Source of the DNA: Dicyema japonicum
Taxonomy: Eukaryota > Animalia > Dicyemida
NCBI GenBank assembly: GCA_011109175.1
Contig: RDEW01000032.1
Location: forward strand, 92,404-156,403
Direction of reading: 5' to 3'
DNA length: 64,000 nucleotides
Shown here: in pieces, positions 1 through 63,255 of the stretch
How the letters are laid out: each line of letters starts with the position of its first letter
Numbering within the stretch: the first letter of the stretch is position 1
Program-made: the position numbers and the translations under genes
Notes under the pieces: generated by a model
Told to the model about the DNA's origin: nothing
Databases searched by the model: none
Seen by the model: only the letters and a program-made list of their open reading frames with translations

Positions 1-460
1 CGTGTTCTAATCTTCCATTAGGATCTTGTAAGGATAAAGGTTTTTCTTAGGTATTTTATTTCTTTTCTCACAAGAGTGAGTAGACCCGATCCTTGGCAAG
101 ATGTACGGTCGGATCTAATTTTGTTGTATCTATTAAATAGATAACTAGGAGTGTTATTTGAAAGCTTCGTTTTCTGGAGAAAGCAAATATCTACTCTGTT
201 TTTTCTCAAAAAAATAAGCAAAGTTCGGAAATTTGTCCTCTGACTTCGTTTATGTCTACGCTCTGGATTGTTAACATCTTTGGACCTGGATTTTGTTACA
301 GGCTCCTGAGGTCAACAGTTTCAATCGATAGAATGTTCCAACATTGAGAGAGTGCCGTCCAATGGAAGTCCTTTGTTTGGTAGCAAGCAAATGATTCTTT
401 TTAGATATAGTTTAGGACTTAATCCAACGGCACCAGAAACGGTGAACAACATGACGCACG
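1..460 (-). mobile_element. Degraded LINE 5' ORF2 fragment (AP-endonuclease/EEP domain)
   Basis: ORF 18-221 'IFLRKNRVDICFLQKTKL...YNKIRSDR...G.GLLTLVRK.IKY' is the EEP N-terminus (D-I-x-x-L-Q-E-T motif); near-identical to the copy at 16975-17410. Confidence 0.75.
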
Positions 461-2730: not shown

Positions 2731-4352
2731 TCAGGTTTCTTCGAATAAGTGGGCAAAAATGTTGAATTCCTTGCGTTTTCGATTAGTATTCTCTTTCTTT
2801 TCAACATTTTCAGATTTTGCGGGCATCAAATGAGCAAAGATTATATGCTCTCTGAACATTTTCGCCTCACTTGCTGCTTGACTAGAAATACAAACTACGA
2901 CGAACTCTGGGTAAGGATTTGGCACGTTGAACCGCTCGCAGAACACATTATCAGGCACCCACCTAATAACCGTCCGTTGAGCGTCCTTCCACCGATTTGA
3001 AGCGATTTCTGAAATGAATAGATTAACGTACTTTCATCAGAGTTATCTTCTTTAGACTCGGCCTCGATTATATCAGTGAGAAGCTTACTCGCCCCAAATT
3101 TAATGGACCTACCATCAGTAATCTCAGTCAGTTTCTCTCCTGGAAGTTAATATTAAAAGAAAAACCAAATATATTGGCTCTGCAGACAGGGTTTTGTGAA
3201 AACCGAGATTTTTTGGTTTCAGATTTACTTTTTTCCGACTCAAAACGACTCGCTCTTGAAGGTCGGTAGATTTTGGTTGCCAAAACAAAAGGTTGATATA
3301 TTCTTATGCTTACCAGATGGACAGCTTCCTCAAATCCCTCTATATCTCCTTCAAATTTCTTAAAATCTTGGAATAATCACAAAATTAACTTAATGGGGCG
3401 TTCTAGCCATCCAATTTGTCTTTTTCCTAGTCTTCCTCATCTCTGACATCAAAATTGTAGTTATTCATGTCAATCGAAGAAGAAATGTTATTTTCGTCAC
3501 GTTCGAATGCTCCCACTCCAAAAGCCTACAATAACGTGTCCACGAATAATGAAAGCTGGCCCTTTGAAGACAAATGTTTCTCACGATCGAGGCCTAGACG
3601 GAATTGGGCAGTTGTAACGTCAGGATCCTTACTTTTTCTGCCAGAAATTGAAATTCCGCTATATCCGAGGCCAAACAGATTGTCCTTTATTTCAAAATCG
3701 ATGACTGGCACATCAGGGGGGTCAAAATCGCTAAATGATGGAAGAGGATCAGGTCGAGGACAGCAGCCATATATCCCCAAAGAAGATTGATTTTTATTGG
3801 CGTCAGATTCATATTTTGAACTTTTTTGACCACCAAAGTTAATTTCACGTTTAATTTTGGCTCCAACTCCCTTGCCTTCTCTCCAACCGAGGGATTTTAG
3901 CAATTTTATACCCATAGCATCACTCCCATCAGCAGGACTAAGTAAAACAACAAAATATACCAAAGAGTAGTGAGTTGAGTCATCAGACAGTCGCCAGAAT
4001 TTTTCTTCGCAAATTTTGCCTGATTGTATTCTTTTTTGGTTTGAACTCTTCTTGGAGCTATCCCAAATTCTCCTAGATCCTCTTCATCTATAAACGCTTC
4101 TGGGGCATGCTCACGCAAATCAGCTTTCTTTGATCTCGAAGAAATAAAGGAAGACGAAGCCCAACCTTCCTTACACCCGACGGTGTTGAAGTATCCAGCA
4201 GAAAAACCGCCTGTGAATGCACCATGGAATCGTTGTCGTCCTTCTTTGTCTGTGACTTTTTGGTGGTAAACTGCTGTAGGGTTTAGTATAAGTTCCTCAT
4301 CTTCTTTTTCTGAAAGAGTAGTTCCGTAAACGATGTATCTGGTATCAGACAT
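2731..4352 (-). pseudogene. GPATCH1: G-patch domain-containing protein 1 homolog with two in-frame TAG codons (pseudogene or rescued gene)
   Basis: N-terminal motif RFHGAFTGGFSAGYFNTVG.KEGW, G-patch MGIKLLKSLGWREGKGVG, AFGVGAF, and C-terminal W.PD..FCERFNVPNPYP. Micro-introns (e.g. 3960-3938, 23 nt) join the exons. In-frame TAGs at 3427-3429 and 3403-3405. Alternative ATG at 4367. Confidence 0.85.
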
Positions 4353-4499
4353 AATTTTGTGACTCATGACACACAGTGAATAAATGAGGTTATTATTTAA
4401 ATTTTTTAATTTAAATCTTAACAAATAACTTAATTCATTTAATAGTTTGAAAGTATTTGTTTTATGTTGAATATTTAATTAATTACTGCTGTTTACCAA

Positions 4500-4640: not shown

Positions 4641-6041
4641 TTGTCGGTGATTTTTGGTTTATAATAATAATTGTTTATTTCGATTCTCGCGTCGTACCAA
4701 GCTGGTCTGTTTACTCGTTTAAAGTAAACTACCATGCTTGATCGCTAAACCCCAAAAGATTTAAACCACCAAATTTCGTTGTGAAATTTGATGATCTCTT
4801 AGAGAGACTTAGCTAGAATTTTCGTTTTCTAATGCTCATCAGTTTGCTATATGTTATCCAAGTTTTGTTCAACGATTTAATTTAATTCACTCTAATGAAA
4901 GACTATTAGTTAAAAGATCAAATAAAATCGTTAATCTATAAATTTAAGAACCATTCAGCCGCCGTCTTAACTCCTTGGCTATTTTTCTCACGACTGCGAG
5001 TGAGATTCGCGCAAAAAGCAAGCAGAATTAATTATATGTTAATAATATTTCTCATTTCGCAGTTGATCTTACATGATTCTGCTATGAAAAATTATCCTAG
5101 GATTTTAATATGTCGCGTGCGCGAAACGCAAATAATATTTAGATAAAACCTAAGTACAAAGAGAAAAGAAGCCCAATTTTAATAGCAAGTGCAATTCAGT
5201 AATTTGGAATCGATTCAATTCGTAGTTACATGAAAAGCTACGTATCAAATGTAAAATGAATCCAATTTTATTTGACGATTCTTTTAGAGCAAGCTTGATC
5301 GAGAAATTAGTCTTCTATTACTAGCAACAGTACAGTTTTTAAGTGGAATCTTCTATCAAAAAGACTTCAATTAACCAATTTTTTCAGTTTAAAAGAAGTG
5401 GTGGTTTCAGTAAAAATGAGTCCAATTTTTGACACAAGCCATCTGTATTGTTCTACGAATTAATTGAGACAGACTCATATTTAAAAATGTTTCATTATGA
5501 TTACATATTTTATTTTATCTGTTTATTTTATTTACCATTTACGATTCTTTATGATTAACTAGAATATGGTAGTTTTTGACTGAACGTAACGCCTGATGAA
5601 ATCAGATCTGACATTCGTGTGTTCCCATTCAAAAGATAGACTTTTCAAACGAAGATCAATTCTCGTAAAATAAATTCCACCCGTTAAGTTATAAGTATTT
5701 CTGATACGACACAGTTGTTGAATGTGGCCATTATGGTAACATAAAAATAATAGTTACAGATTAGATTGTTTTCTTATTTTATTAAGCACATTCAAAAAAG
5801 GGTTAATTCGTTTTAATCTTTACTAAGTTAGATTCAAAAAAAGGGTTAATTCGTTTTAATCTTTATTAAGCTTCATAGCAAAAGAGAAAATTATGGCTGA
5901 AATTAATTTTTTGGTAATTGAAGAGTTCTTAGTCAACTTAGATAGTCACCAATATAATTTATATTTGAATATGACATATATAATACCATTTTCAATATTT
6001 TTGTTAGCAACAATCAATATCAATTCTTCGCTAAAAAAACC

Positions 6042-9000
6042 NCACGCGGACTCGATTTATATTAAAAGTTACTAATATCATAAGTACGTAATTCAATTTC
6101 TCCAGAGACATTACTTTTTGAAGAAAATTCTATTTTTCCTTCTACTTTTTGTTCGATGATTTCATATTTTTTATTACTATCTAGAGGAATGCCATTTACT
6201 GGATCAAAGATAGCTTTTCTTGCTATAGACGCTGTTTCATTTGATAGATTATCTATTGATTCAAGTAATTCAAAAAAATCTTTAACATTTTGACCGTTCT
6301 AATATTATTATTTAAAATCAAAAACCTCATCGGTGTGATTACTTATCAATTTATCTTAGAATTAAAAAAATGACAAACCTGCTAATTTTTCTAATTTATA
6401 ATTAGGTTCGATTATTTTAACAAAGATTTTGAAGTTTGATGAATTTCCTCCATTTAGCAAGTTATTTAAATATTCATTTAGGAAATCATCTCTCGACTTT
6501 AATAAAATATAGGTAGAATTTTCATTTGGTCTTTCACTTTGTAAATATTCAATCATCATTTGAAAATTTATAAACATATTATTTTCATTGATACAATTAT
6601 TTGAGGCAAAATTCTCCACAAAACTTATTTTTTGTGAATCGTTATTAATATTATTAGTTATGATGTTTTGTAATTTGATCATCAATTCTTCTTTTAAGGA
6701 ACCGATCAAAAAGTTCCTAAAATAGACATCAGTAGAATTGAAGGATATTATTAATTCGCAAATAGATGTATGTGAACTTAATAAAAGTTTTGATTTTATA
6801 CCGTCAAAGAAAATATCTCTATCTTCATCATGATTCTATACATTATTAGAATTTTACTTTTTTGTTAAATAAGTATTTTAAATTTCGCAAATAATTTTGT
6901 TCCTCACTAAGTGAAATGATTAATTCTTTGAGACCTATGAATTATTTATATACATACAATAATTAAATTCTTTTATACCTGCACACCAGTTTAAAGTTTC
7001 ATCAATATTTGTATAATTATTTGAAATAGATGCTAATTTTTTAAATTTATACTCGAATTCATTAATTTTAATAAATAATTGAAAGTTTGATTCACTTCCC
7101 CCATTAATCAAAATATTAATATATTCATTAACAAAATAATTATTTGAAATAGATGCTAATTTTTTAAATTTATACTCGAATTCATTAATTTTAATAAATA
7201 ATTGAAAGTTTGATTCACTTCCCCCATTAATCAAAATATTAATATATTCATTAACAAAATCATCAAACGATTTAAATAAAACATCTGTAATATTTTCATT
7301 TGGTTCTTCGTTTCGTAAATGCTCAATTATCATATCAAAATTTATAAACTTATTATTTTCATTTACACAATTTGTATTATATTCTGAATTACCAACAAAA
7401 ATTATTTCTGCTGAATTTATATTTTTTAAATAATTTTCGAAAATAATTTGTAATCTGTTTTTTAATTCCATATTTATGGTATCGTATACAAACTGTTTAA
7501 ATTGGAAATCATTAAAATTAAAGGACATTATTTGGCAAATAGACATTAAGCTCAAAAAAGGTATTGATTTTACATTTTCAAAGATATTATCTCTATTAGC
7601 ATCATTATTCTAAAAATTATGAAAAATTTACTTTTTTGTCATATAAAAATTGTAAATTTTGCAAATAATTTTGTTCCTCACTAAATAAAATGATTAAGCA
7701 TCATTAACCTAAAAATTATGAAAAATTTACTTTTTTGTCATATAAAAATTGTAAATTTTGCAAATAATTTTGTTCCTCACTAAATAAAATGATTAATTCT
7801 TTAAGACCTATAAATTATTTATATACATACATTCATTTAACTTTTTAATACTTACACACCAGTCTAACCCTCCATCAATATCTGTATTATTATTTGAGAT
7901 AAATACTATTTTTTTTAAATTATATCGATAATCAATAACTTTAAGGAAAATATCATGATTTGATTCAGTTCCACCATTAATTATATTATTTAAATACTCG
8001 TCGACAAAATAATTAGTCCATTCAGAAGTTACTAATCTTCTTGATAAATGATAAAATATCATTTTAAAATTTATAAACCTATTATCTTCATCTATACAAT
8101 CAGGATCATAGAAAGAATTATCAACAAAAATTTCAGAATCTTTTCCATTTTCATAATATTTTTCTAATATATATTGCAATCTATTTCTTAATTCTTCTTT
8201 AATGGTATCTTTTAAAAATTTTTTAAAAAAATGATCAGTTATTCTGAAGGCCATTATTTGGCAAATAGACATTTTTAAACTCAAAAAAGGTATTGATTTT
8301 ACAATTTCAAAGAAATTATCTCTATTTGTAGAAGTTATCTAAAATTATTAAAATAAGACTTTGAGGATATATAAGTGATACATATTTGCAAAATAATGTT
8401 GTTCCTGACTAAGTAAAATAATTATTTGATTAAGACCTATGAATAAATTATATACATACAGTAATTAAATTCTCTTATGCCAAGACACCAGTTTAATGTC
8501 TCAATTTGTGTAATATCATTCGAGATAGATGCCATTTTTTTCAATTTATACTCGAAATTAGTAATTTTGACAAAGATTTGGAAGTTTGATTCATTTCCAC
8601 GAATAATTAAATTTTGTATATATTCATTAACAAAATCATATCTTGAATCCAGTAAAATTTCTCTCACATTTTCATTTGGTCTTTCGGATTTCCACGAATA
8701 ATTAAATTTTGTATATATTCATTAACAAAATCATATCTTGAATCCAGTAAAATTTCTCTCACATTTTCATTTGGTCTTTCGATAGTTAAGTGTTTTAGCA
8801 TAATTTCAAAATTTATAAACTTATTATCTTCATTTATACAATCAGGATCATTAGTATAATCATTAACATAAATTAATTTTGTAGAATATGAATTAAAATA
8901 AGTTATTATACTAAATTTAAAATCGTTTCTTAATTCTTCTTTTAGTGTCTCGATTACAACACTCTTCAATCCCATAGTAGTAAAATTGAAAGCAATTATT

Positions 9001-9941
9001 TGGCAAATAGATATCTCTAAACCCAAAAAAGTATTTGATCTTAAAGCGTCATAGAAAATATTTAAATTGGTACTACTTATCTAAAAATAAGGAAAATTTA
9101 ACATGTGTGAATAAGTTATTAATATTTGGCAAATAATTTGGTTCCTGACTAAGTAAAATAATTATCTGATTAAGACCTATAAATAATTTATGTACATACA
9201 GTAATTCAATTTTCTTATGCCAAGACACCAGTTTAGTGTCTCAATATGTGCAACATCATTCGAAGTAGATGCCATTTTTTTCAATTTATACTCGAATTCA
9301 GTAATTCTGACAAAAATTTGGAAGTTTGATTCATCTCCACTAATAATAATATTTTGTATATATTCATTAACAAAATCATATCTCGAATCCAGTAAAATAT
9401 CTGTCATATTTTCATTTGGTCTTTCAATAAGTAAATGCTCAATTATCTCTTGAAAATTTATAATCATATTATTTTCATCTATACAATTAGCATTATTAGC
9501 AATATTAAAATCAAATATTTTGGAATTATTTGGAGATTTAAAACAAATTATTATATAGAATTCTAATTTGTTTCTTAATTCTTCTTTTAGTGTCTCGAAA
9601 AAAAATTTCTTCAATTTTATAGTAGTAAAATTGAAGTTAAGTATTTGGCAAGTAGATATCTCTAAATCCAAAACAGTATATGATTTTATAGTGTCATAGA
9701 AAATATTTGTATTGGTACTACCCATCTAAAAATAAGAAAAATTTAACCTGTATGAATAAGTAATTAATATTTGGCAAATAATTTGGTTCCTGACTTAGTG
9801 AATAGATTAATTGTCTAAAACCTAAGAATAATTTATATATATACATTCATTAAAATTATTTCCTAAACAATTGTGCAATCTCTCATCAATTCTATCATGA
9901 TTTGAAACTTTTATAATATGCAAACAGCAGAAAAAAAGCAT
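6042..9941 (-). CDS. Adhesion-GPCR-family ectodomain gene A: signal peptide + 5 tandem ~195-aa repeats + start of GAIN region (3' part lost at N junction)
   Basis: ATG 9941 (MLFFCCLHIIKVS). Introns 9844-9822, 9747-9726, 9199-9177, 9102-9081, 8459-8437, 8359-8339, 7830-7808, 6957-6935 and 6857-6836 (21-23 nt, GT..AG) link the ORFs in frame. Post-repeat exons (SIARK.IFDPVNGIP.DS) match locus B. Duplications near 7610-7730 and 8593-8781 interrupt the frame as assembled. Confidence 0.8.
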
Positions 9942-11899: not shown

Positions 11900-13160
11900 C
11901 TAGGTTTCAGCATATCCTCCTTGGACAAGGTACACTTCCTTGGCTGCCTTCTCGGAAACGACAAGTTAAAAATTGCCTTACCAGTAAGAATAATGAAGTT
12001 GAAGCCTTCACAAGGAGAGTATCATCTTTAGATTCACATGTGTCTTTCTTGCTCAAGAAATGTATTTCCGTGTAGAAGAGGATGTATATTTGAGATCTTC
12101 ACCATGTTTTGAACACCGGAATGCACTATTGTCGTCTGTGATGGGATTCTAAGACGATCGACGGAGTCATTACTGAATGTCAAATTCGATGATCTGGGCT
12201 GGAGTATATGCAAACAACCTGCAAGAAATGGGGATATTGGGTTGAGATCCCACTTGAAGCCGCCCTGCCTGCCTACTTTTGATCCCTTGCAAGCTGCATT
12301 TGCTTGGCCCAAGCAGTCCTACGTAACGCAACCGGACATACCTTGGACTCGGAGCTTGACAGTGTTTTCAAGCAGTGGGGTGAGTTGGACTTGGAATTCC
12401 CGTAGACTTCACTTGCCAGAAGAGTTCGGACTCAATCGCATGTATGAGAACTCTGGAGGCCGCGAAAAAAAGCGCCAACCAAAACCGAATAGCAAGCATT
12501 AAGTCGGCCGCACATCGCGGAAATGGAGTCTGGCTCGAGGTCCTACCTTGCCCACATCAGATGACCCTCCTTGACAAAAACAGCTTGAGGATCGGGGTGG
12601 CACTGCGCTTAGGACTGGACATATGCCAAAGACACAAATGCCGTTGCGGCGGGGACGTTGATACGAAAGGATTACATCCACTCTTTTGCCGACGGAGTGC
12701 TGGTCGAGCCCCGCACCACGCAGCCCTCAATGACATCATCTTTCGAGCCCTCAAGGGTGCGGGATTTCCGGCCCAATTAAAACTATTGGGCTTAGACAGA
12801 GGCGACGGGAAGATGTCGGATGGAATGACGTTATTCCCATACTCCCACTTAAAATCACTTTTCTGGGACGCAAAGTGTGTGGATACCTTCTAAAAAACCA
12901 GATTGCTGACGGCGACGCACTCTCCTAGAGACGCAGTCGACCAGGCGGAAGTCAAGAAGATCCATAAGTACGAATCCCTCGGAGACCATTACCATTTGCT
13001 GTGGAGACAACTGGAACTGTAGGCTCGAAGACGGAAGCCTCCACAGCATTGGAAGCAAACTCGCATCAAAAAGGTGCGAGCCACGGGAGGGATTCTGGTT
13101 GAGGCAGAGGCTCGAAATGGCGATTATTAGAGGTAACGCCTTCCCCATTCTGTCGTCCTA
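11900..13160 (+). mobile_element. CRE/SLACS-like non-LTR retrotransposon fragment (CCHC + restriction-like endonuclease)
   Basis: LRIGVALRLGLDICQRHKCRCGGDVDTKGLHPLFCRR..GR..HH.ALNDII.RAL..AG......GLDRGDGK.SDGMTLFP.....L.WD.KCVDTF; ends RQRLEMAIIRGNA followed by A/T-rich tail. Confidence 0.85.
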
Positions 13161-13269
13161 ATTATTTCCTAATTTTTTCCAATTTTTATAAAAATAAATT
13201 AATTAAATTAAAAAAATTATTTTTTATAGTAAATCAAAAATTTATTAACAATAAAATATTATTTTTAAC

Positions 13270-14060
13270 TATGGGGGAGAGCGGCTGAAGTAATCACTGA
13301 GTAAGCGTTTCCGCGAACAACTGCGATTCAAATTCTTTGCCTCAGTTAGACCGCTTCTCCGCACGTCTTTTTCGCGATGGGCCAATTTTCCCCCGATTTC
13401 CTATAGGAAAGAGGCTGTAATACTTCCGGCAGGACCAGACGTCTCGATTGCTACCGGTACAAAACGGTAGCGATTTCCAATTTCGCCATATTTCTTAATC
13501 TTGATTTTCTCGGCCAGATCGGCTGCCGATCCAGCAGACTGCACCGAGCTGATCATCATCGAGTTCGAGAAAGAGTCCACAACAGTGCAGTCCCATACGA
13601 GCGATTTTCCCTCAGTGAACGGAAAGATAGTTAACCCATCCGGTCTTTTCCCATCTCCGCGTTCCAATCCCACAGGCTCCAGTACTGCCGGGAAGCCTAC
13701 CGCTTCAAGAGCTCGCAAGACAATGTTGTTCATAGCAGCATAGCGGGGTGCTCTGCCTGCTCCTTTTGCACGAGAGCGCGTGTAGCCCTTTGGCATCGAC
13801 GATCCCTCGACAGCGACTTTNCGGGGTGCTCTGCCCGCTCCTTTTGCACGAGAGCGGGTGTAGCCGTTTGGCATCGACGATCCCTTGACAGCTACATTGA
13901 TGTTCGACGCAAACATCAGCTCCCAGGCGTTGTGCGATCCCAATTCTAATACAGTCATCGTCCAATAGGGTCCCCAGGGAGGAACACGGGACTGCATCCA
14001 GCCACGCTCCGCTCCCATTAATAAATTGGTCCGTAGATTGCTTCCAATCATCTTTTATAT
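13270..14060 (-). mobile_element. CRE/SLACS-like non-LTR retrotransposon fragment
   Basis: EPVGLERGDGKRPDGLTIFPFTEGKSLVWDCTVVDSF and RFVPVAIETSGPAG (PD..D..E-type RLE); CxC/H..C knuckle in the overlapping frame. Confidence 0.85.
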
Positions 14061-15679: not shown

Positions 15680-16152
15680 ATAATAAATAATTAAGCACTA
15701 CCGCGTTGCCATAAGCATGTAAGATGACTAGGGATTGCTCGTGCAGAACACACACTTTATTTAAGTAAAGAATAGTTATTAAAACTAAGCGTAGAGGGAG
15801 AACCAAAGAATGCTCTTCACTTATTTGTTTTTTATTTTTCTTGTGTGTATGTCCTATTGCCTAGGGTTTCGCTCGTGCAGAACACACACTTTATTTAAGT
15901 AAAGAACAGTTATTAAAACTAAGCGTAGAGGGAGAACCAACGAATGCTCTTCACTTATTTGTTTTTTATTTTTCTTGTGTGTATGTCCTATTGACTATCC
16001 AATTGGGCAGTGAATCTCCACTGATGACAGCGTCACTCGTCAGTCCTTTCTGCATCGTAGATGGGTGGAAACATCCACCAGATGAACAACAACAACAATC
16101 AAACCCGTGACCTAAGCAACTTTAGCCCATCACCTAACCACTATGCCACCCT
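15680..16152 (-). mobile_element. tRNA-derived SINE, family 1 (with internal 134-nt tandem duplication)
   Basis: Head GGGTGGCATAGTGGTTAG (A box) ... GGGTTTGATT (B box); body and tail match 32181-32510. Confidence 0.8.
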
Positions 16153-16619
16153 GCATGAGTTTCTTCCTTCAAATTTTATTTGTGCTTTTCGTGATCAATG
16201 TTTAGTCCCCTGATTCGATTAATAACCTCTCGTGATCGATGTGTCATTTTCTTAAGGGTATTTCTTTCCATAATTAATTTTTGTTTTTGAGCCGTATTTT
16301 AATTTTTCGTCTTTTATTTATGCTTTTCGGTAAAATTTTTTTCAATGATTGCTATGTTGAAAGTATACAGCTCTGTCTATGCAGAAGAAATTATGCAGTC
16401 TTGAATCAACAAAATTTGCACTTCTGTAATCATAGAAATGAATAGGCTCGGTACAAAACGTGGCTCGTTCGGTAAAATTTTTTTCAATGATTGCTATGTT
16501 GAAAGTATACAGCTCTGTCTATGCAGAAGAAATTATGCAGTCTTGAATCAACAAAATTTGCACTTCTGTAATCATAGAAATGAATAGGCTCGGTACAAAA
16601 CGTGGCTCGCAGTTCAGCT

Positions 16620-27130: not shown

Positions 27131-27322
27131 TTAACTTTCTCCATGCATCCAGAGTTAATAATAATCTCGGTTGATTACTGTTTAAATAATTGAGTTTTTA
27201 TCGATCATTACTTACTCTACTGCTATTTTACTGTTCAACATAGCAGACTTTAGTATAAGTTTTAAATTTCTATCCAAAATCACTGTTAATGTAGTTTTAG
27301 ATACGCAAAGACATTCATGTCT

Positions 27323-27823
27323 NNNNNNNNNNNNNNNNNNNNNNNNNNNNNNNNNNNNNNNNNNNNNNNNNNNNNNNNNNNNNNNNNNNNNNNNNNNNNN
27401 NNNNNNNNNNNNNNNNNNNNNNNNNNNNNNNNNNNNNNNNNNNNNNNNNNNNNNNNNNNNNNNNNNNNNNNNNNNNNNNNNNNNNNNNNNNNNNNNNNNN
27501 NNNNNNNNNNNNNNNNNNNNNNNNNNNNNNNNNNNNNNNNNNNNNNNNNNNNNNNNNNNNNNNNNNNNNNNNNNNNNNNNNNNNNNNNNNNNNNNNNNNN
27601 NNNNNNNNNNNNNNNNNNNNNNNNNNNNNNNNNNNNNNNNNNNNNNNNNNNNNNNNNNNNNNNNNNNNNNNNNNNNNNNNNNNNNNNNNNNNNNNNNNNN
27701 NNNNNNNNNNNNNNNNNNNNNNNNNNNNNNNNNNNNNNNNNNNNNNNNNNNNNNNNNNNNNNNNNNNNNNNNNNNNNNNNNNNNNNNNNNNNNNNNNNNN
27801 NNNNNNNNNNNNNNNNNNNNNNN
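27323..27823. other. Assembly gap (501 N)
   Basis: Run of N; single Ns also at 6042 and 13821. Confidence 0.99.
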
Positions 27824-28392: not shown

Positions 28393-31300
28393 TTAATTTG
28401 TGTGAATTGGTCGTCTTGTAAAATTTTGTCTTTTATTGGAAATAAAATTTTTGTAGAAAATATATTTATAAGCTTGAATAAAATAATTTGATTCAGTTAA
28501 GAGTAAATTTCCATTATCATTTTCTAAGGTAAGATCTAGGGCGTTTGTTTGTTGTGCGTTATCATTTATTGGATTTACTTTTTTAGCTAACGTTTGTTTT
28601 AAATTCATAGTATTTAAAAGGAGAATGAACAAACCTTGAAAACTAACGAAGATAATAAAAAAATATTCTAACACCGTGCTAAATCTAACAAAAAATAATA
28701 AAATCCATGGAAGTCCTAAAATATTTTATAAATTTACCTGAAAAAAAAAAAACTGAAAATAAAATTTTGTTTTTAATTGATTTTGTATTTATTGGTGTTT
28801 TAATTTTTATAAATCCACACATCAAAATAATGTATAATATAAAATTTAGAAGCAGACATATTATAATAGGACCAAGCAATCCCAAATAAAAGCCAAGTCC
28901 GGTTATCAAGCATTTCCCTTCGGAATAATAAACATTTTTATTTATCATTAAAATTAAACTGACAATAAAGAGTGGAATACCTAATTACAAATAAAACTAA
29001 TATTAAACCCCAACTAATAACAAATGCTTTGACCTTCAAATATTTGATGTTGACTCCAATTACTTTGTTAAATTTTAAATAATGTACAAATGATATTATG
29101 AACATCCACAAAAATTGAGTCAAAATTCCATAGTGGAGTAAAACTCCAACTATTACGCATTCTATAAAACTTTTCTGTGAAGAATAAATGATTCCAAAAA
29201 TAAACACCATGTTCAACATCAAAATTGATGTTTTCAAATTAAGTAAAAGAATTTGAAAAATAGAATTCTTCAAAAGTCTCAATTAAATAAATAATAGCAA
29301 CCTAAATTTGATTATAAATATAATAAATGAAAATATTATAGCGACTGTGGAGAAAGAAATTCCAATTATTGTAATCACTGTAGTTTCATCATTTTTAATT
29401 TCGGAGTTAGTTATAGGACCCTAACGTGAAAATGATAATTACAAATAGAATTGCAAAACTTGTCAAATGCAGAGATTTACAGATATAAAACAAATCAGCA
29501 ATTTCTATTCTACCCGCATTTTCCCAAAGGCCAGTTTCGTTGTTGTAAAATACACACTTTGGAGTAAACCCCTGTAATTAATATGTTTTGCTACTTTATT
29601 AGTATATTCACTATAATTTGAATGTATTGGAAATTTTAATGATAAAGATTTTATTTCAAACTGAGCGACAATCGAAACTTGAAGCGATTGTGGAGATGTT
29701 CCATTTGTAGGAGTTAATTTGCTTTCATTATGAACAACCACGCGAACTCGATTTATTTATAAAATTACTTTCGGTAGGATCTTCAGTAAGTAATTCGATT
29801 TCTCCAGTAACATTATTTTTTGAAGAAAATTTTGAATTTCTTACCACTATTTTATCGATGACTTCATATTTTAGAATACTATCTGGAGGAATGCCATTCA
29901 CTGGATCAAAAATAACTTTTCTTGCTATAGACGCAGTATCATTTGATAGTTTACTAGTAGATTCAAGTAGTTTATTAAATTTTGCAACAACTTCTTTTTT
30001 CTAAAATTTCATTTAAAATCAAATAACCTCATCGCTGTTATCCGTTTTTATCAAATTATCTTAAAATTAAAAAAAATTTTCCAACCTGCTAAATTTTTGA
30101 ATTCATACTCATATTCGGCAATTTTAACGAAGATTAGAAAGTTTGATTCATTTCCTCCATTAATCAAATTATTTAAATATTCATCCACGAAATAATCTAT
30201 CGACTCAAATAAAATATCTGTAGTATTTTCATTTGGTCTTTTGTTTCGTAAATGCTCAATTAACACTTCAAAATTTATAAACTTATTATTTTCATTTGTA
30301 CAATTAGTATCATTAGCAGAATTACCAACATAACTTAATTCAGAAGAATTTCTATTATTAAAATAATTTTCGATGATATATTGTAATTTTTTTCTTAATT
30401 CTTCTTTAAGGGTCTCGTGTACAATATTCTTTAACTGGATATCAAGAAAATTGAAGGTCATTATTTGGCAAATAGAAACCTGTGAACTCAAAAAAGGTAT
30501 TGATTTTAAATTATCATAGAAAATATCTCTATTTTTATCATTAGTCTAAAAATTATGAAAATCTGACTTTTGTTGCATACAAGTAATTTAAATTTTGCAA
30601 ATAATTTTGTTCCTGACTAAGTGAACTAAGTAATTCTCTAAGACCTATGAATAACTTATATCCATACAATAATTAATTTCTTTAGATCTACACCAGTCAA
30701 ATGCTCCATCGATATTTATGTTATTATTTGAACTACTCGCTATTTTTTTTAATTGATACTTAAATTGAGTAACTTTAACAATGATTTGAAAGTTTGATTC
30801 ACTTCCTTTATTAATCAAATTATTTAAATATTCAATGACAATTTCATATTTCGAATCAATTAACACTGAGTCAAAATAAAAAATTTCATTCGGTCTTTCT
30901 TTACGTACATAATCATTTATCTTTTTAAAATTTATAAAAATATTATTTTCTTTAATACAATTATCATCATTGTTTGAAGATGAATTATCAACAAAAATTA
31001 TTTCAGGAGAATTCCTTTTATTATTATAATAATCTTCCATGACATGTAGTAATCTGTTTTGTAAATCTTTTTTTAAGGTATCGCTTACAATCTTCTTCAA
31101 ATTATTATCAGTAAAATTGAAGGCCATTATTTGGCAAATAGAAACCTGTGAACTCAAAAATGGTATTGTTTTTAAATTATCATGGAAAGTATCTCTATTT
31201 TCATCATTAACCTAAAAATTATGAACTATGAACTTTTGTTTCATACAAGTAATTTAAATTTTGCAAATAATTTGGTTCCTGACTAAGTGAACTAAGTAAT

Positions 31301-31436
31301 TCTTTAAGACCTATGAATAACTTATACACATACAATTATTAAATTCACTTCCAATTGAGCACGATGCAAATTTCTTATCAATTATTTCATCACCATTTGA
31401 AATTTTTAAAATAAGCAACCAACAGAAAAGAATCAT
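28393..31436 (-). CDS. Adhesion GPCR B: signal peptide + 2 novel ~195-aa repeats + GAIN/GPS + 7TM, apparently intact
   Basis: ATG 31436 MILFCWLLILKISNG|DE; 22-28-nt GT..AG introns keep one frame throughout. GPS CVFYNNETGLWENAG...YICKSLHLTSFAILF (29556-29443); secretin-type TM motifs (C..VGVLLHYGILTQFLWMFI, SWGIP, GLPW, SFQGLFI); stop at 28393. Confidence 0.88.
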
Positions 31437-32180
31437 TATCGTTAATAATTTATGGTTTTGTTTTTATATGTAAATGTAAATTATATGCTAATTTTCGTTT
31501 CAAGCATAATTTTAGTAGAAAATACGAATAGAAGGTCAGAGATTTCTTTGCTAAAATTGCGATCCGTGCAATCGATTGATCGGCAGTTCTTTTTTTCGCT
31601 CAGACCTCTTTCTGCTATTTCTGAATGACAATCATAATTGCTGCTATTCTTAATTTCCTCATTAGAGAAGTGATGAAATAAGCGAGAATACTAAAAAAAT
31701 AGAATAATTTATATATGTAGACTATGTTGACCTAATTTCCAATACAGAGCTTCTAACACTCTCATTAAACTCTCTTGCGTTCTCAATAATCAAATTAATG
31801 AAAAGATTACAGATATTTACTTCTAGCTTTACTATACAAAAAACTCTCTAAGGAAATTATGAATTGTCTACTATGTTTGTTATTGACCCTTTAATTACTA
31901 TGTGACCTATTAATTTGCAAAAGTGACGATGATTCTGAATTTCTCAATTTATAATTTTCATTAATTAATGAAAAGATTACAGATATTTAGTTCTTGCTTT
32001 ACTATACAAAAAACTCTCTAAGGAAATTATGAATTGTCTACTATGTTTGTTATTGACCCTTTAATTACTATGTGACATATTAATTTGCAAAAATGACGAT
32101 GATACTGAATTTCTTAATTTATAATTTTCAAGAAAAAACTTCCACGTTTGTGAAATTATTCAACTCTAATCTTTCAATAG

Positions 32181-33860: not shown

Positions 33861-34910
33861 TTAAATAAAAATCGCTTTCGAGCTTTTATTCGATTTATTT
33901 GAATATCTGCTATTTCGTCGCCCAGTAATCAAGTTGACAAACTTAATGGAAATCGTTTTTAATCTGCCAACAAATAAATTCCACATATTTCTGTTATTAA
34001 TCAACACAAGGTAGAATTTTGCAGCAAAATGGGACGAATAAACGGCATAAAAATAAATCGATTTAATATGGTGGACAAAAAGCGAATATTTTATGGCCTC
34101 AAAATTCACATTAATACTTTTAGTCTTATATTCCTTTGTAACACTAATGTCGATAACGTAGATTATTGAGTAAGACAAGGCACACGTGACAAAGAATAGC
34201 GAAGTCACACACAGGTTAATCGTCAACCGAGAGAATAGGGGATTTTCTACATCGGTTATTTTGCAGAAACGAATCAATATCATGTTCAATATTATGACAG
34301 CCAAAGGAATGACCATAACCATGATTATCTGAACTACAATGAAATAATATTTCAGAAAATTCTTGAATTTTTCGTCGATGAGGATCTTACAGGAATACAC
34401 GCCAAATATGTCTCGCTCACTCTTGTAGGAAACTCCGGAAGGGATGCTTAGCAATAAGCAAACACAAATCACGACTAGAATTGCTATCCTTGCTGTCCTC
34501 CGCGAGCAGTAAATCCTTCGTAGTAACGGCTTTCTGATCGAAATGAATCTCTCAACACTGAAACAGAGGATCAGCATAGGCGAACAGTATTGACAAAAAT
34601 TGAAGAGTAATGCATTCAGTTTGCACATGAAATCACTTGAATCTAGACGATTACTTCCCAGCACAACGACTGATCGCAATCCACAGTTCGAAATGAAAAA
34701 CAGCAACTCAACAAATCCCAACGAAAACATATACAGCCCCGAAGAAAATTTCCACAGTTCAGGATTACTCCAGGTTACAATTGAAAAAATGTTTCCAGGA
34801 ATTCCCAATAAAGACCAAAATATAAGAAAAAATTTTTCCACTTGTATCACATAAGGCGGAATAATCTGTAACCTTCTTATTTCATAAATCAAGTCTGTTA
34901 GATTAGTCAT
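33861..34910 (-). CDS. Intronless class A (rhodopsin-like) GPCR, peptide-receptor-like, 349 aa
   Basis: TM1 LGIPGN, ECL1 Cys (FMCK), TM3 SVERFISI.KPL, ECL2 Cys, seven hydrophobic segments, N-terminal NLT sequon. Confidence 0.85.
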   Translation of the reverse strand: MTNLTDLIYEIRRLQIIPPYVIQVEKFFLIFWSLLGIPGNIFSIVTWSNPELWKFSSGLYMFSLGFVELLFFISNCGLRSVVVLGSNRLDSSDFMCKLNALLFNFCQYCSPMLILCFSVERFISIRKPLLRRIYCSRRTARIAILVVICVCLLLSIPSGVSYKSERDIFGVYSCKILIDEKFKNFLKYYFIVVQIIMVMVIPLAVIILNMILIRFCKITDVENPLFSRLTINLCVTSLFFVTCALSYSIIYVIDISVTKEYKTKSINVNFEAIKYSLFVHHIKSIYFYAVYSSHFAAKFYLVLINNRNMWNLFVGRLKTISIKFVNLITGRRNSRYSNKSNKSSKAIFI

Positions 34911-52695: not shown

Positions 52696-53478
52696 TTATT
52701 TACAAAACTTAAATTTTTTCTGCCTTCTGTTAGAGAACCAAATCCTTACACTACACTCCGGCAAATCCAAGTTTTTTGCAACTTCTCGAATCTCTAATTT
52801 GGAAGGATAAATGTCGTGATTGAACATTTTTTCTAACTTTTCTTTCATATTCCTGTTGAAACACCTTCTTTTCTTGGCACTCTGAAACGTGGACGACCTG
52901 ATCTCGGATTTAGAGGGAGAGTCCTTCATTATTAGTACCAAAATATTAGCAAAAATATTTCTGAATCTTTTCATGCTTATAAAAGAAAGTTTTCCACACT
53001 CAAAACGGCAGACCGTCGATTGACAAACGGGGTACCCATTCTTCTCAAGTAGCGAGGCAATGTCTGATTGCGCATAACCAAGTTTGCTACGTTCTCTCTT
53101 AAAAAAATTAGCAAAACAATATATGTCCGACTGTGGATTTTTTACTTCACAAAAACTGTCGGCCTGGAGTAGTGATCCATTCGGTTGAGGGACGTAACTC
53201 AAGGCTGAATCATTACTATTTTGTCTGGCTAAATAGTCGGTTCCTCGATGGTAATCAGGTTCACTTGAATTCAAATTGCACAGAGAGGTGTAGTTCAGGT
53301 AATTATTTGGATTCTGAACGTTAACTGCATATAAGGCATCTGTAAATGTCAAATGAGACGAGTTGCAGGAAATAATCTGGTTTCCATGGGAATAATCGTA
53401 GTAGTTTAGCCCAGGGTCATTATTGGAAGTTGTATAAGTTTCGAAATCTTTTTGTAGCCCGTTGAACTGATAACCCAT
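52696..53478 (-). CDS. Divergent intronless POU-domain transcription factor (260 aa)
   Basis: POU-specific FA..FKRER.KLGY.Q.DI...CQSTVCRFE and homeodomain KKRR.F...LE..F...YPS..EI..VA..L.L....VRIWFSNRRQK. Confidence 0.9.
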   Translation of the reverse strand: MGYQFNGLQKDFETYTTSNNDPGLNYYDYSHGNQIISCNSSHLTFTDALYAVNVQNPNNYLNYTSLCNLNSSEPDYHRGTDYLARQNSNDSALSYVPQPNGSLLQADSFCEVKNPQSDIYCFANFFKRERSKLGYAQSDIASLLEKNGYPVCQSTVCRFECGKLSFISMKRFRNIFANILVLIMKDSPSKSEIRSSTFQSAKKRRCFNRNMKEKLEKMFNHDIYPSKLEIREVAKNLDLPECSVRIWFSNRRQKKFKFCK

Positions 53479-61029: not shown

Positions 61030-63255
61030 ATTTATTATTTAAGCACTTCACGAGAGCCATACTAATTATAGCCCCGCATGTGCAGCAAAAGAAACAAGGT
61101 TAGATGTCATCCTTTTCCATGCTCCCCTGTTCCTAGCCAAGGCTCTCATGTTGTCCAGGTCGTCGGCATTTTTTAGATTTCTTTTGATATTGACCAGGTC
61201 TTTTTGTAAGACTATTGGCAGTGTTGTTCTAGGTCTTCCACGATAGCGGCCTTCTTGACTAACATAGTATGTTTTTATAGATATGTTAGGTGGGGATGTT
61301 AATTCTATCCTCAGCACGTGTCCGAAGAGCTTCCATCGGGATTCCAGTACTTCTAAGCTGATAGGTCTAGAGCTGCATCTCTTATATAAAGCATTCCTCG
61401 ATATTCTCGTTGGCCAAGTAATTCCTGTTATTTTTCTCAGCTGACCTCTGTGGAACGAGTCTAGTTTTTCCATATCCGCTGATGAGGTCGCCCAAATTCC
61501 AGCGTTATATAAAAGTACGGGTTTTATGAATGAGTCGTATAATAGGATTCTCATTTTCGTGTCGATACCTTTTTGATTGAGCCATGGATTCTTCAGTTTA
61601 TATAACGCAGCATTGGCTAGAGTTTTCCTACTTAAAATATCTTCGCTATCTCCCAGCAGTGAACCAAGTTTCTTTACTTGTCGCCACTTCTCTTCTAGGA
61701 CGTTACTTATCATTTTTATCTCTGTGAGTTCTGTTTTCTCTCTGTTCACAGTAAGAAACCATTTCCCTAGTACATCTGGTGCTTTTTCTAATAGGTTTTC
61801 CAGGACCTCTTTGTCTTCAGGAATTAGGTCTACATCGTCCGCGTAGATTACTTCTTCCATCTTTCCTTGGTATAACGGTCTAAGTTCCCTCATAGCGGCT
61901 TCCAAATAAATTGTGAATAGTTGAGGAGAACGAGATTCTCCTTGTGGAGTGCTCGTATTTGTTTCAAATTTTCTTGAATAGGTCTTTCCGACTCTCACAA
62001 GGAGCTCAGTGTTTAAAGTAAAATTCGAGTCATCCTTAGACTCGACTCATCAAGAAATCCGCTTAGTACCCCCATTAATACGTTCCTGTTAACCGTATCA
62101 AAAGCTTTGATAGGTCAATTCCCAGAATATTGGTGGCGTTACGGTATCTTTGATATGTTGCACACCTCCATCTGTGACTCCAGACCGCATCAGCTGTGGA
62201 TCTCCCTTCTCGAAAACCACTTTGACTATCTGGTAGGTATTTGTAAGCAGATCCTTTTATTTGTTCAAGCACACTGTTTGCCAAGACTTTGCATAATTAA
62301 TTTAGTGATATGATGGGTCGCAAATTTTCGAGCGGTCCTTTGGTTTTGTTGATTTTTTGTATGGGGATTAGTAGTCCCGTACCCAGAGGTATAGTTGAGT
62401 TAGTCGAAAACATTTCGTTTAGTAGTGTAGCGGTTTTTCCAAAAAGGGCGCCAAGGCCGTATTTCAGTAATTCTGGGTTTATCGCATCTGGTCCAAGACT
62501 TCTGTTATTCTTGAGTTTACGGCAGGCCATTTTGATTTCCTCGACCGTGATTGGTATCTCCAGGGGGTTTTAGCCTTCCAACAAATGGGTAGATTTCCAT
62601 GGTTTTGATGTTGAAAAGCTTCTCAAAGTGAGCCGCGATAGCTTCAGTTTGTTCTTCGGTGTTCAGTATCAGCTTACCGTTCTTGTCTTTTATGGTTAGT
62701 CGACTTCTGTTTGTTCGCCGCAGCAAACGGGCAGCGACGTACACCTGTGAGTTGTCTTTCACTTTGTTTACTTCTATACAGGAAGCTATTTCTTCTATGA
62801 AAAGCTTCTTGTTCAGACCCTTTATTTTTTATTTTCTTCTGACACGTTGCCTTTCGCCTTGAAGGGCTTTTATCGTATTAGTGTCAGTGGCATTTGATTT
62901 TTTCATATTTATTTCTTTTAGACTTTTCGCAAGCTCAGGAACATCTGGATGAATAGCCTTCAGGTGCATTTTACTATTCTCCCTTTTGCCAAGACATGCT
63001 TAAGCAGCTTCGTTGATGGTGTTTTTTGTGCGTTTCTTCTAACGTGGGATCCACCAATACGTCCTGCATATGAGTCTGAATGTATTGTTGATATCTCTCA
63101 GTAGTCTCCGGTTGGGAAATCAGACTTTCAGTCGCATAGTCACCTCTGATTTTCTCAAATTCGTGATTTTTGGAATTCCTTGTATTTGATGGCATGTTTT
63201 TTCAGGGTGAAGGTCGCAATAACCATCTTGTGGTCGCTGACAGTCGTCGAGCCTT
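61030..63255 (-). mobile_element. 5'-truncated RTE-like LINE (ORF2 RT), frameshifted
   Basis: LKNNRSLGPDAI.PELLKYG, IPIQK...ENLRPI, SQSGFREGRST.DAV, PQGES.SPQLF.IYLE, YADD, KKLGS.L, PVLLYNA.IW, WKLFGHVLR. Confidence 0.9.

Follow-up and report, generated by a model that had tools for sequence, protein, structure and literature searches.

A row of orphan open reading frames in Dicyema japonicum most likely belongs to one micro-intron gene for the outer part of an adhesion-type receptor

On the minus strand of a 64,000-nucleotide stretch of the Dicyema japonicum genome (assembly GCA_011109175.1, contig RDEW01000032.1, positions 92,404-156,403), a row of open reading frames (ORFs) with very alike products lies between positions 6040 and 9941. 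The whole 64-kb stretch is referred to below as the window, and all coordinates are positions within it. The GC content of 6040-9941 is 22%, that of the surroundings 32-39%, and every long ORF ends in ..N-(Y/E)-C-M-Y-I-x-x-x-TAG. The locus raises the question of whether these ORFs are small genes in their own right or parts of a larger one, and what a larger one would encode. A reading of the letters alone, referred to as the sequence-only reading, had described five separate ORFs as the micro-intron-joined repeats of a hidden polyprotein. According to our analysis the ORFs are most likely exons of one minus-strand gene for the outer part of an adhesion-type G protein-coupled receptor (GPCR). 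The ORF list shows six ORFs and not five, as unit 2 is split by a 95-nucleotide (nt) duplication, and the count of five tandem units was retained.

To locate the exon borders, short AT-rich segments of the form GT..TAG were scanned for, and a 23-nt candidate was found exactly at each ORF end. A second GT..TAG candidate, 21-22 nt in length, was present 74 or 77 nt beyond each 23-nt segment. Seven junctions were aligned, five from the gene at 9941-6043 and two from a second gene at 28.4-31.4 kb (the paralogue). The 23-nt segment is nearly invariant across all seven: GTATGTATATAAATTATTCATAG. The mini-exon lying between the two introns is either 74 or 77 nt long, a difference of 3 nt only, and the second intron varies by 1 nt (21 or 22). 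The 23-nt intron is in phase 1 and interrupts a cysteine codon (T/GT) and the second one is in phase 0; therefore, skipping of the mini-exon or read-through of 119-122 nt would break the frame. The earlier proposal that the common ORF tail is a 23-nt intron (T/GTATG...TAG/GT), followed by a mini-exon of 74-77 nt and an intron of 21-22 nt, agrees with these results: a GTAT..TAG segment splits the cysteine codon at the end of each long ORF, and the lengths of the following parts are as proposed.

Excision of 13 introns of 21-27 nt, all GT..AG, resulted in a single frame from the ATG at 9941 through exon 1, five units and three tail exons. The intron ends other than TAG were one AAG and one GAG. 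The determined parts of the gene are as follows.

9845-9941, minus strand: exon 1 with the ATG, a short hydrophobic N-terminus and the first C-x7-C loop; homologous to exon 1 of the paralogue (31436-31334).
9200-9821, minus strand: unit 1; preceded by intron 9844-9822 (23 nt), mini-exon 9821-9748 (74 nt), intron 9747-9726 (22 nt), long exon 9725-9200.
8460-9176, minus strand: unit 2; preceded by intron 9199-9177 (23 nt), mini-exon 9176-9103 (74 nt), intron 9102-9081 (22 nt), long exon 9080-8460.
7831-8436, minus strand: unit 3; preceded by intron 8459-8437 (23 nt), mini-exon 8436-8360 (77 nt), intron 8359-8339 (21 nt), long exon 8338-7831.
6958-7807, minus strand: unit 4; preceded by intron 7830-7808 (23 nt), mini-exon 7807-7731 (77 nt), intron 7730-7709 (22 nt) or, across a duplicate, the alternative intron 7730-7610, long exon 7609-6958 containing a 123-nt duplication (7013-7260).
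6379-6934, minus strand: unit 5; preceded by intron 6957-6935 (23 nt), mini-exon 6934-6858 (77 nt), intron 6857-6836 (22 nt), long exon 6835-6379.
6043-6378, minus strand: tail, i.e. stalk and start of a GAIN-like region; intron 6378-6355 (24 nt, ending in AAG), exon 6354-6326 (29 nt), intron 6325-6299 (27 nt), exon 6298-6073 (226 nt), intron 6072-6051 (22 nt), exon fragment 6050-6043.

Each unit consists of a mini-exon of 74-77 nt and a long exon of 457-652 nt and encodes 178-202 residues in the spliced model. All junctions lead back into frame (10 of the 10 unit junctions and 3 of the 3 further tail junctions), and the spliced product ends with ..KLADKLISNHTDENGQNV..GEIELRTYDIIRV. The earlier statement that the junctions checked are in frame thus holds; the frame is open from end to end only when one copy of the 95-nt duplicate in unit 2 is omitted. 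The start of the units was set at the cysteine loop (WC-x7/8-C), the first loop being provided by the signal-peptide exon. Unit 5 is devoid of the C-terminal cysteine loop, and so is the last unit of the paralogue. As no loop follows the last unit of either gene, five whole units are counted here and two in the paralogue. The units generally contain four cysteines, as had been described for each domain, with the exception of the last unit of each gene which has three or two. Between one and five N-x-S/T sequons were found per unit, in accordance with the N-glycosylation sites reported earlier. The hydrophobic N-terminus, the five units, the sequons and the paired cysteines of the spliced model are features of an ectodomain. 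The term polyprotein was not supported: no protease domain, conserved inter-unit cleavage motif or sign of cleavage between units was seen, the segment between units is a conserved cysteine loop followed by a helix, and the layout is that of the N-terminal fragment of an adhesion GPCR.

That the ORFs are five (or six) small genes independent of one another, with each stopping at its own TAG, is suggested by mechanical ORF calling, which yields separate ORFs. This is extremely improbable on the present data, as no ATG is located near the start of units 2-5 and the spacers of 74-77 nt show conservation at the protein level, with no stops and with 3-nt indels. Moreover, the equal layout in the paralogue runs into a GPS motif and a seven-transmembrane region (7TM). 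The comparison of seven units, five from the gene at 9941-6043 and two from the paralogue, gave a similar picture. No in-frame stops were detected in any of the seven units including their mini-exons, and the other frames contain 15-45. Simulated neutral substitution at p = 0.18-0.28 produced 7-10 stops per unit and left fewer than 0.1% of units stop-free. With the displaced duplicate set aside, the frame set by splicing is the only one in which the eight mini-exon copies are free of stops. Exon lengths change by multiples of three and intron lengths by 1-2 nt. The protein identity among the seven units is 41-65%, and the ratio of nonsynonymous to synonymous substitution rates (dN/dS) between units is 0.5-1.2 by the Nei-Gojobori method, which is crude at such composition. 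Judged from these sequence comparisons, the reading frame is clearly maintained and the protein sequence is fast-changing. The closest unit pairs lie within one gene (A1-A2, B1-B2), which points to recent unit duplication or gene conversion. Since phase-1 introns flank the units, the gain or loss of a complete unit leaves the frame intact; five units are present here and two in the paralogue.

Among animals, introns shorter than 30 nt are known only in myxobolid myxozoans and D. japonicum, with a median of about 22-27 nt and reduced 'GTa' and 'AG' signals (PMC13644364). The introns at 9941-6043 share with that published set the length of 21-27 nt, the reduced 'GTa' 5' signal, the bare 3' AG with A-rich letters before it, and the large number of introns per gene. 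They differ in that the 23-nt intron is near-identical in all seven copies, that one intron ends in AAG and one in GAG, and that splicing is read here from the genomic sequence alone. In the neighbouring GPATCH1-like gene (3526-4424, minus strand), the DUF1604 exon (E = 8.7e-34) and the G-patch exon are likewise connected by a GT..AG intron of 23 nt, located at about 3959-3937. Micro-introns in this gene and in the paralogue indicate that they are the rule in the genome, and we infer that those at 9941-6043 are spliced in vivo.

The nature of the encoded protein was deduced from the paralogue. The paralogue and the end of the gene in the assembly are as follows.

28393-31436, minus strand: complete paralogue with signal peptide, two units, stalk, GPS motif (..CKSLHL/TSFAILF) and 7TM.
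6042: a single N marking the assembly break by which the gene is cut; the homology to the paralogue ends at 6043.

The removal of nine introns of 22-27 nt from 31436-29421 gave a signal peptide, two units, a stalk, ..CVFYNNETGLWENAGRIEIADLFYICKSLHLTSFAILF and then the first transmembrane segment. The Pfam GPS match of the paralogue has E = 5.7e-8 and 33.6 bits against a cut-off of 22.5, and its 7tm_2 match reaches 24.1 bits against a cut-off of 20.6. Splicing of the same introns in the paralogue therefore recreates a Pfam-significant GPS motif next to 7tm_2, which supports the gene model at 9941-6043. A scaffold gap of about 500 N is located at 27320-27820, just downstream of the paralogue. 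The homology between the two genes extends from approximately 350 nt upstream of the ATG (10297 vs 31742) down to exactly 6043, and the nucleotide identity of 6043-7134 with 29739-30841 is 77%, in line with the earlier statement that the tail exons are homologous to those of the adhesion GPCR at 28.4-31.4 kb. The tail exons of both genes align with identical intron positions, exon indels of 3 and 6 nt and an intron indel of 2 nt; the positions and phases of the unit introns are common to both genes as well. At the level of sequence, one spliced frame with five units was thus demonstrated, along with a stalk that has its homologue in a bona fide adhesion GPCR. The stretch 9941-6043 is likely to be the 5' two-thirds of one gene, a tandem paralogue of the adhesion GPCR at 31436-28393.

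A secreted repeat protein which ends near 6040 and has no 7TM would account for the lack of a GPS motif and a 7TM for the 9941-6043 copy in the window, where tblastn with the later exons of the paralogue detected only the paralogue, and the frame does reach a TAG shortly past the N. However, the N is an assembly join, and the contigs on each side diverge from the window. None of the genomic contigs of the same sample crosses it: those arriving from 6041 run into unrelated letters, while the continuation of a contig of sequencing run X2 arriving from 6043, reverse-complemented, matches the next exon of the paralogue (exon 8; ..CATAATGAAAGCAAATTAACTCCT). The divergence of the contig ends at the N indicates that the gene is cut by a mis-join. 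The absence of 7tm_2 for this copy is due to the assembly break and is not a demonstrated loss; as to the GPS motif, the copy has homologous stalk exons up to the break and a contig end that continues like the paralogue. A secreted product is very unlikely. As an adhesion GPCR, the product of the gene would be anchored in the membrane.

The assembled frame is broken at two positions, both of which lie in tandem duplications detected with Tandem Repeats Finder, each of exactly 2.0 copies.

8593-8782: 95-nt x 2.0 tandem duplication, 94/95 identical, inside unit 2.
7598-7796: 99-nt x 2.0 tandem duplication, 97/99 identical, within which lie the greater part of mini-exon 4, the intron of 22 nt belonging to it and 11 nt from the exon that follows.

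Because of the 95-nt duplication, unit 2 goes out of frame and meets a TGA after 395 spliced codons from the ATG; from the second copy the frame is open for another 779 codons up to the N. At the 99-nt duplicate normal splicing meets a stop, and joining of donor 7730 to acceptor 7610 would give the mRNA of the unduplicated gene. The 123-nt duplication at 7013-7260 (123/123 identical) is in frame and adds 41 residues to unit 4. The sequence-only reading, which was too confident of an unbroken frame, overlooked the 95-nt frameshift, the 99-nt duplication and the cut at the N.

Several observations weigh against an intact receptor gene. As assembled, the frame is interrupted both within unit 2 and by the 99-nt duplicate; should these duplications be genuine, the copy would be a pseudogene or yield a product of only about 390 residues. 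The putative signal peptide of exon 1 was judged by eye alone, and neither a GPS motif nor a 7TM for this copy is found in the window. The dN/dS values of 0.5-1.2 are compatible with relaxed constraint. In two run searches, the locus was matched by genomic runs only, with no RNA run and no spliced joints, the latter not being expected from DNA. The matching runs numbered four, and their contigs retain the introns and cover the intergenic DNA evenly; genomic runs from 2019 were heavily mixed with other DNA. For example, record 10 of run X2 spans 6524-7025 with both introns present and no difference from the window, and the intergenic flanks are at equal depth. Two low-depth contigs, 99% identical to 6186-6436 and 9262-9476, were found in run X5 (2015, labelled as another organism), consistent with parasite traces in a host-labelled sample.

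A young pseudogene or truncated copy, in which the duplications of 95 and 99 nt have truly damaged the gene and the five-unit protein is no longer made, would explain the TGA after 395 codons, the lack of a matching RNA run, the dN/dS near 1 for some unit pairs and also the fact that no contig joint skipping 95 nt was present among the contigs listed. In opposition to this, no stops or frameshifts other than the duplications occur in approximately 1,170 codons at 22% GC. Duplications of 2.0 copies, 95-170 nt in length and 95-100% identical, occur seven times in the 64-kb window; further ones are at 15725-15997, 16326-16609 and 31793-32130. The copies differ by 0-2 nt (by 1-2 nt in the two that break the frame), as is expected of alleles, which points to an assembly artefact. 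For the D. japonicum draft, a pooled sample whose heterozygosity was 1.24% was assembled with Platanus and with Falcon, the two assemblies were merged, and GapCloser was used (PMC6736024). Reads covered the duplicates of 95 and 123 nt at single-copy and not at doubled depth (about 150 in X2, 15-17 in X4), and the value for the 95-nt duplicate weakly favours an artefact. The recurrent 2.0-copy duplications look like an assembly signature, either allelic copies placed in tandem or a product of gap closing. Altogether, the 95-, 99- and 123-nt duplications are somewhat better explained as artefacts of assembly than as real lesions, and a pseudogene is considered unlikely, albeit with an appreciable minority chance. 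An intact and expressed receptor gene is presumed in what follows.

The contigs disagree with the window at other positions as well. One genomic contig connects 7697 to 8326, which shows a paralogue or an allele with a different arrangement. All genomic contigs differ from the window at four bases in 8355-8383 (mini-exon 3 and intron 6), and the reads carry a 3-nt in-frame insertion at 7545. These disagreements indicate paralogues or alleles together with local consensus errors in a repeat-rich locus.

The repeat itself had been reported as unassignable to EGF, Ig, LRR, cadherin or CUB domains, and this was corroborated by sequence and fold searches. No Pfam match above the cut-off was obtained (best E = 0.013), and GAIN, EGF, Ig, LRR, cadherin and CUB gave no hit at E<=1. 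The weak matches to ATP10, DUF1340, RepB_C, SapB_2 and others were below the cut-off and inconsistent between units, and were rejected. The search with a profile of the seven units against 1.84 billion cluster representatives gave one match, P0001, which was discarded as a chance hit; what it had matched was a short motif, N/S-rich, within a repeat protein of 3,282 residues. The best match among PDB sequences had E = 0.035. The ESM Atlas feature search led to unnamed bacterial and viral clusters with a best score of 0.89, under the lead threshold, and an exact-product look-up of the ATG-started ORF 9180-9725 returned no record.

AlphaFold2 predicted the same topology for two different units (pLDDT 71, pTM 0.67-0.68): three helices, a small beta-hairpin and four helices. 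The predicted hairpin carries the invariant NC-x-NENN-x-FINF motif, and the low-confidence part of the first model is the C-terminal segment which was assigned to the next unit. The expectation of a probably helical ectodomain is borne out by these models. Foldseek against PDB, AFDB clusters and Swiss-Prot gave only matches with E>0.5 and template modelling (TM) scores <0.35, the ESM Atlas shape search TM<=0.34, and VIA-align against 48,161 chains a best Z of 5.0, far under the noise level quoted for helical models. The Pfam, AlphaFold and Foldseek checks proposed earlier hence resulted in no confident match to a known extracellular domain, HormR and saposin included, and it is established that the repeat has no detectable relative. 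A new fold is not established with seven sequences and medium model confidence. An origin of the repeat by duplication of GAIN subdomain A was not supported, since there was no Pfam GAIN match and no GAIN structure among the Foldseek and VIA matches; for the last unit it retains some likelihood.

The adhesion GPCRs (class B2; GPS PF01825 and 7tm_2 PF00002, e.g. latrophilin/ADGRL-type) have in common with the gene at 9941-6043 a signal peptide, a long ectodomain of tandem modules, and a stalk, the latter being homologous here to that of the neighbour gene with GPS (HL/T) and 7tm_2 above the Pfam cut-offs. In contrast to them, the module (helical, four cysteines) matches no known adhesion-GPCR domain, a separate helical GAIN subdomain A is not recognisable and the last repeat occupies its place, and a GPS motif and 7TM of this copy are absent from the window. 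In the proposed architecture, each unit would comprise a short cysteine loop, an amphipathic helix encoded by the 74-77-nt mini-exon and a helical core with the small beta-hairpin encoded by the long exon. A glycosylated N-terminal fragment of such lineage-specific binding modules would sit on a GAIN/GPS stalk, and the stalk would control a secretin-family 7TM. For the control step the paralogue served as the model, as the 9941-6043 copy has its 3' part beyond the break at 6042. Based on the paralogue and on knowledge of the family, autoproteolysis may occur at HL/T, with TSFAILF.. then acting as a tethered agonist for the 7TM. It may be speculated that the fast-evolving units of variable copy number bind ligands on host or self surfaces.

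Helical, cysteine-containing tandem modules are also found in the ectodomains of parasite surface families, such as the DBL domains of Plasmodium PfEMP1. The resemblance is an analogy only: tandem helical extracellular modules, copy-number variation between paralogues, fast evolution and a parasitic life are shared, whereas no sequence or fold similarity was found and the anchoring here would be through a GPCR. A further-reaching view is that the repeat is a new extracellular fold restricted to one highly reduced parasite lineage, probably the dicyemids. A small and rapidly diversifying family of adhesion GPCRs would use it in numbers that vary from gene to gene (2, 5, ...), and these receptors would be the main sensors of host or cell contact in an animal with an exceptionally limited receptor set (PMC6543705). 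The phase-symmetric, micro-intron-bounded units would then be cassettes for copy-number change. This view in full is doubtful. In a literature search, no paper tying dicyemids to adhesion GPCRs was found.

The remainder of the window contains metazoan genes (POU homeobox, rhodopsin-type GPCR, dynein heavy chain, GPATCH1). The rhodopsin-family GPCR is intron-less and 349 residues long (33861-34910, minus strand; 7tm_1 E = 2e-18), a notable find in a dicyemid, for which just two receptors of this family have been reported (PMC6543705). A POU-class homeobox exon is located at 52696-53478, minus strand (Pou E = 1.7e-10, Homeodomain E = 2.9e-16). A reverse-transcriptase fragment (61066-61998, minus strand; RVT_1 E = 2.3e-11) and an endonuclease-like ORF (18-221, minus strand) are probably remnants of long interspersed nuclear elements. 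The GC-rich island at 12001-14000 (48.6% vs about 35%) contains a 78-nt tandem repeat at 13744-13892, and the ORFs 12444-12893 and 13401-14051 in it have no Pfam match. The tRNA and Rfam scans of the 64-kb window detected nothing.

If the proposed gene is real, its repeat would be a new helical disulfide-bonded module for adhesion-GPCR ectodomains; about 15 billion predicted proteins, searched through the 1.84 billion cluster representatives, contain no relative. The example also demonstrates that naive ORF reading fails in micro-intron genomes, where one receptor gene seems to be a row of orphan ORFs. Near-perfect duplications of 95-170 nt and single-N mis-joins in the draft can mimic pseudogenes, and the duplications may produce false frameshifts elsewhere, which bears on other 'pseudogene' readings in this genome. 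Only four secretin-family and two rhodopsin-family receptors have been reported for Dicyema sp. (PMC6543705). With so few membrane receptors reported in the animal, this gene may be a large part of its sensing of host and self cells.

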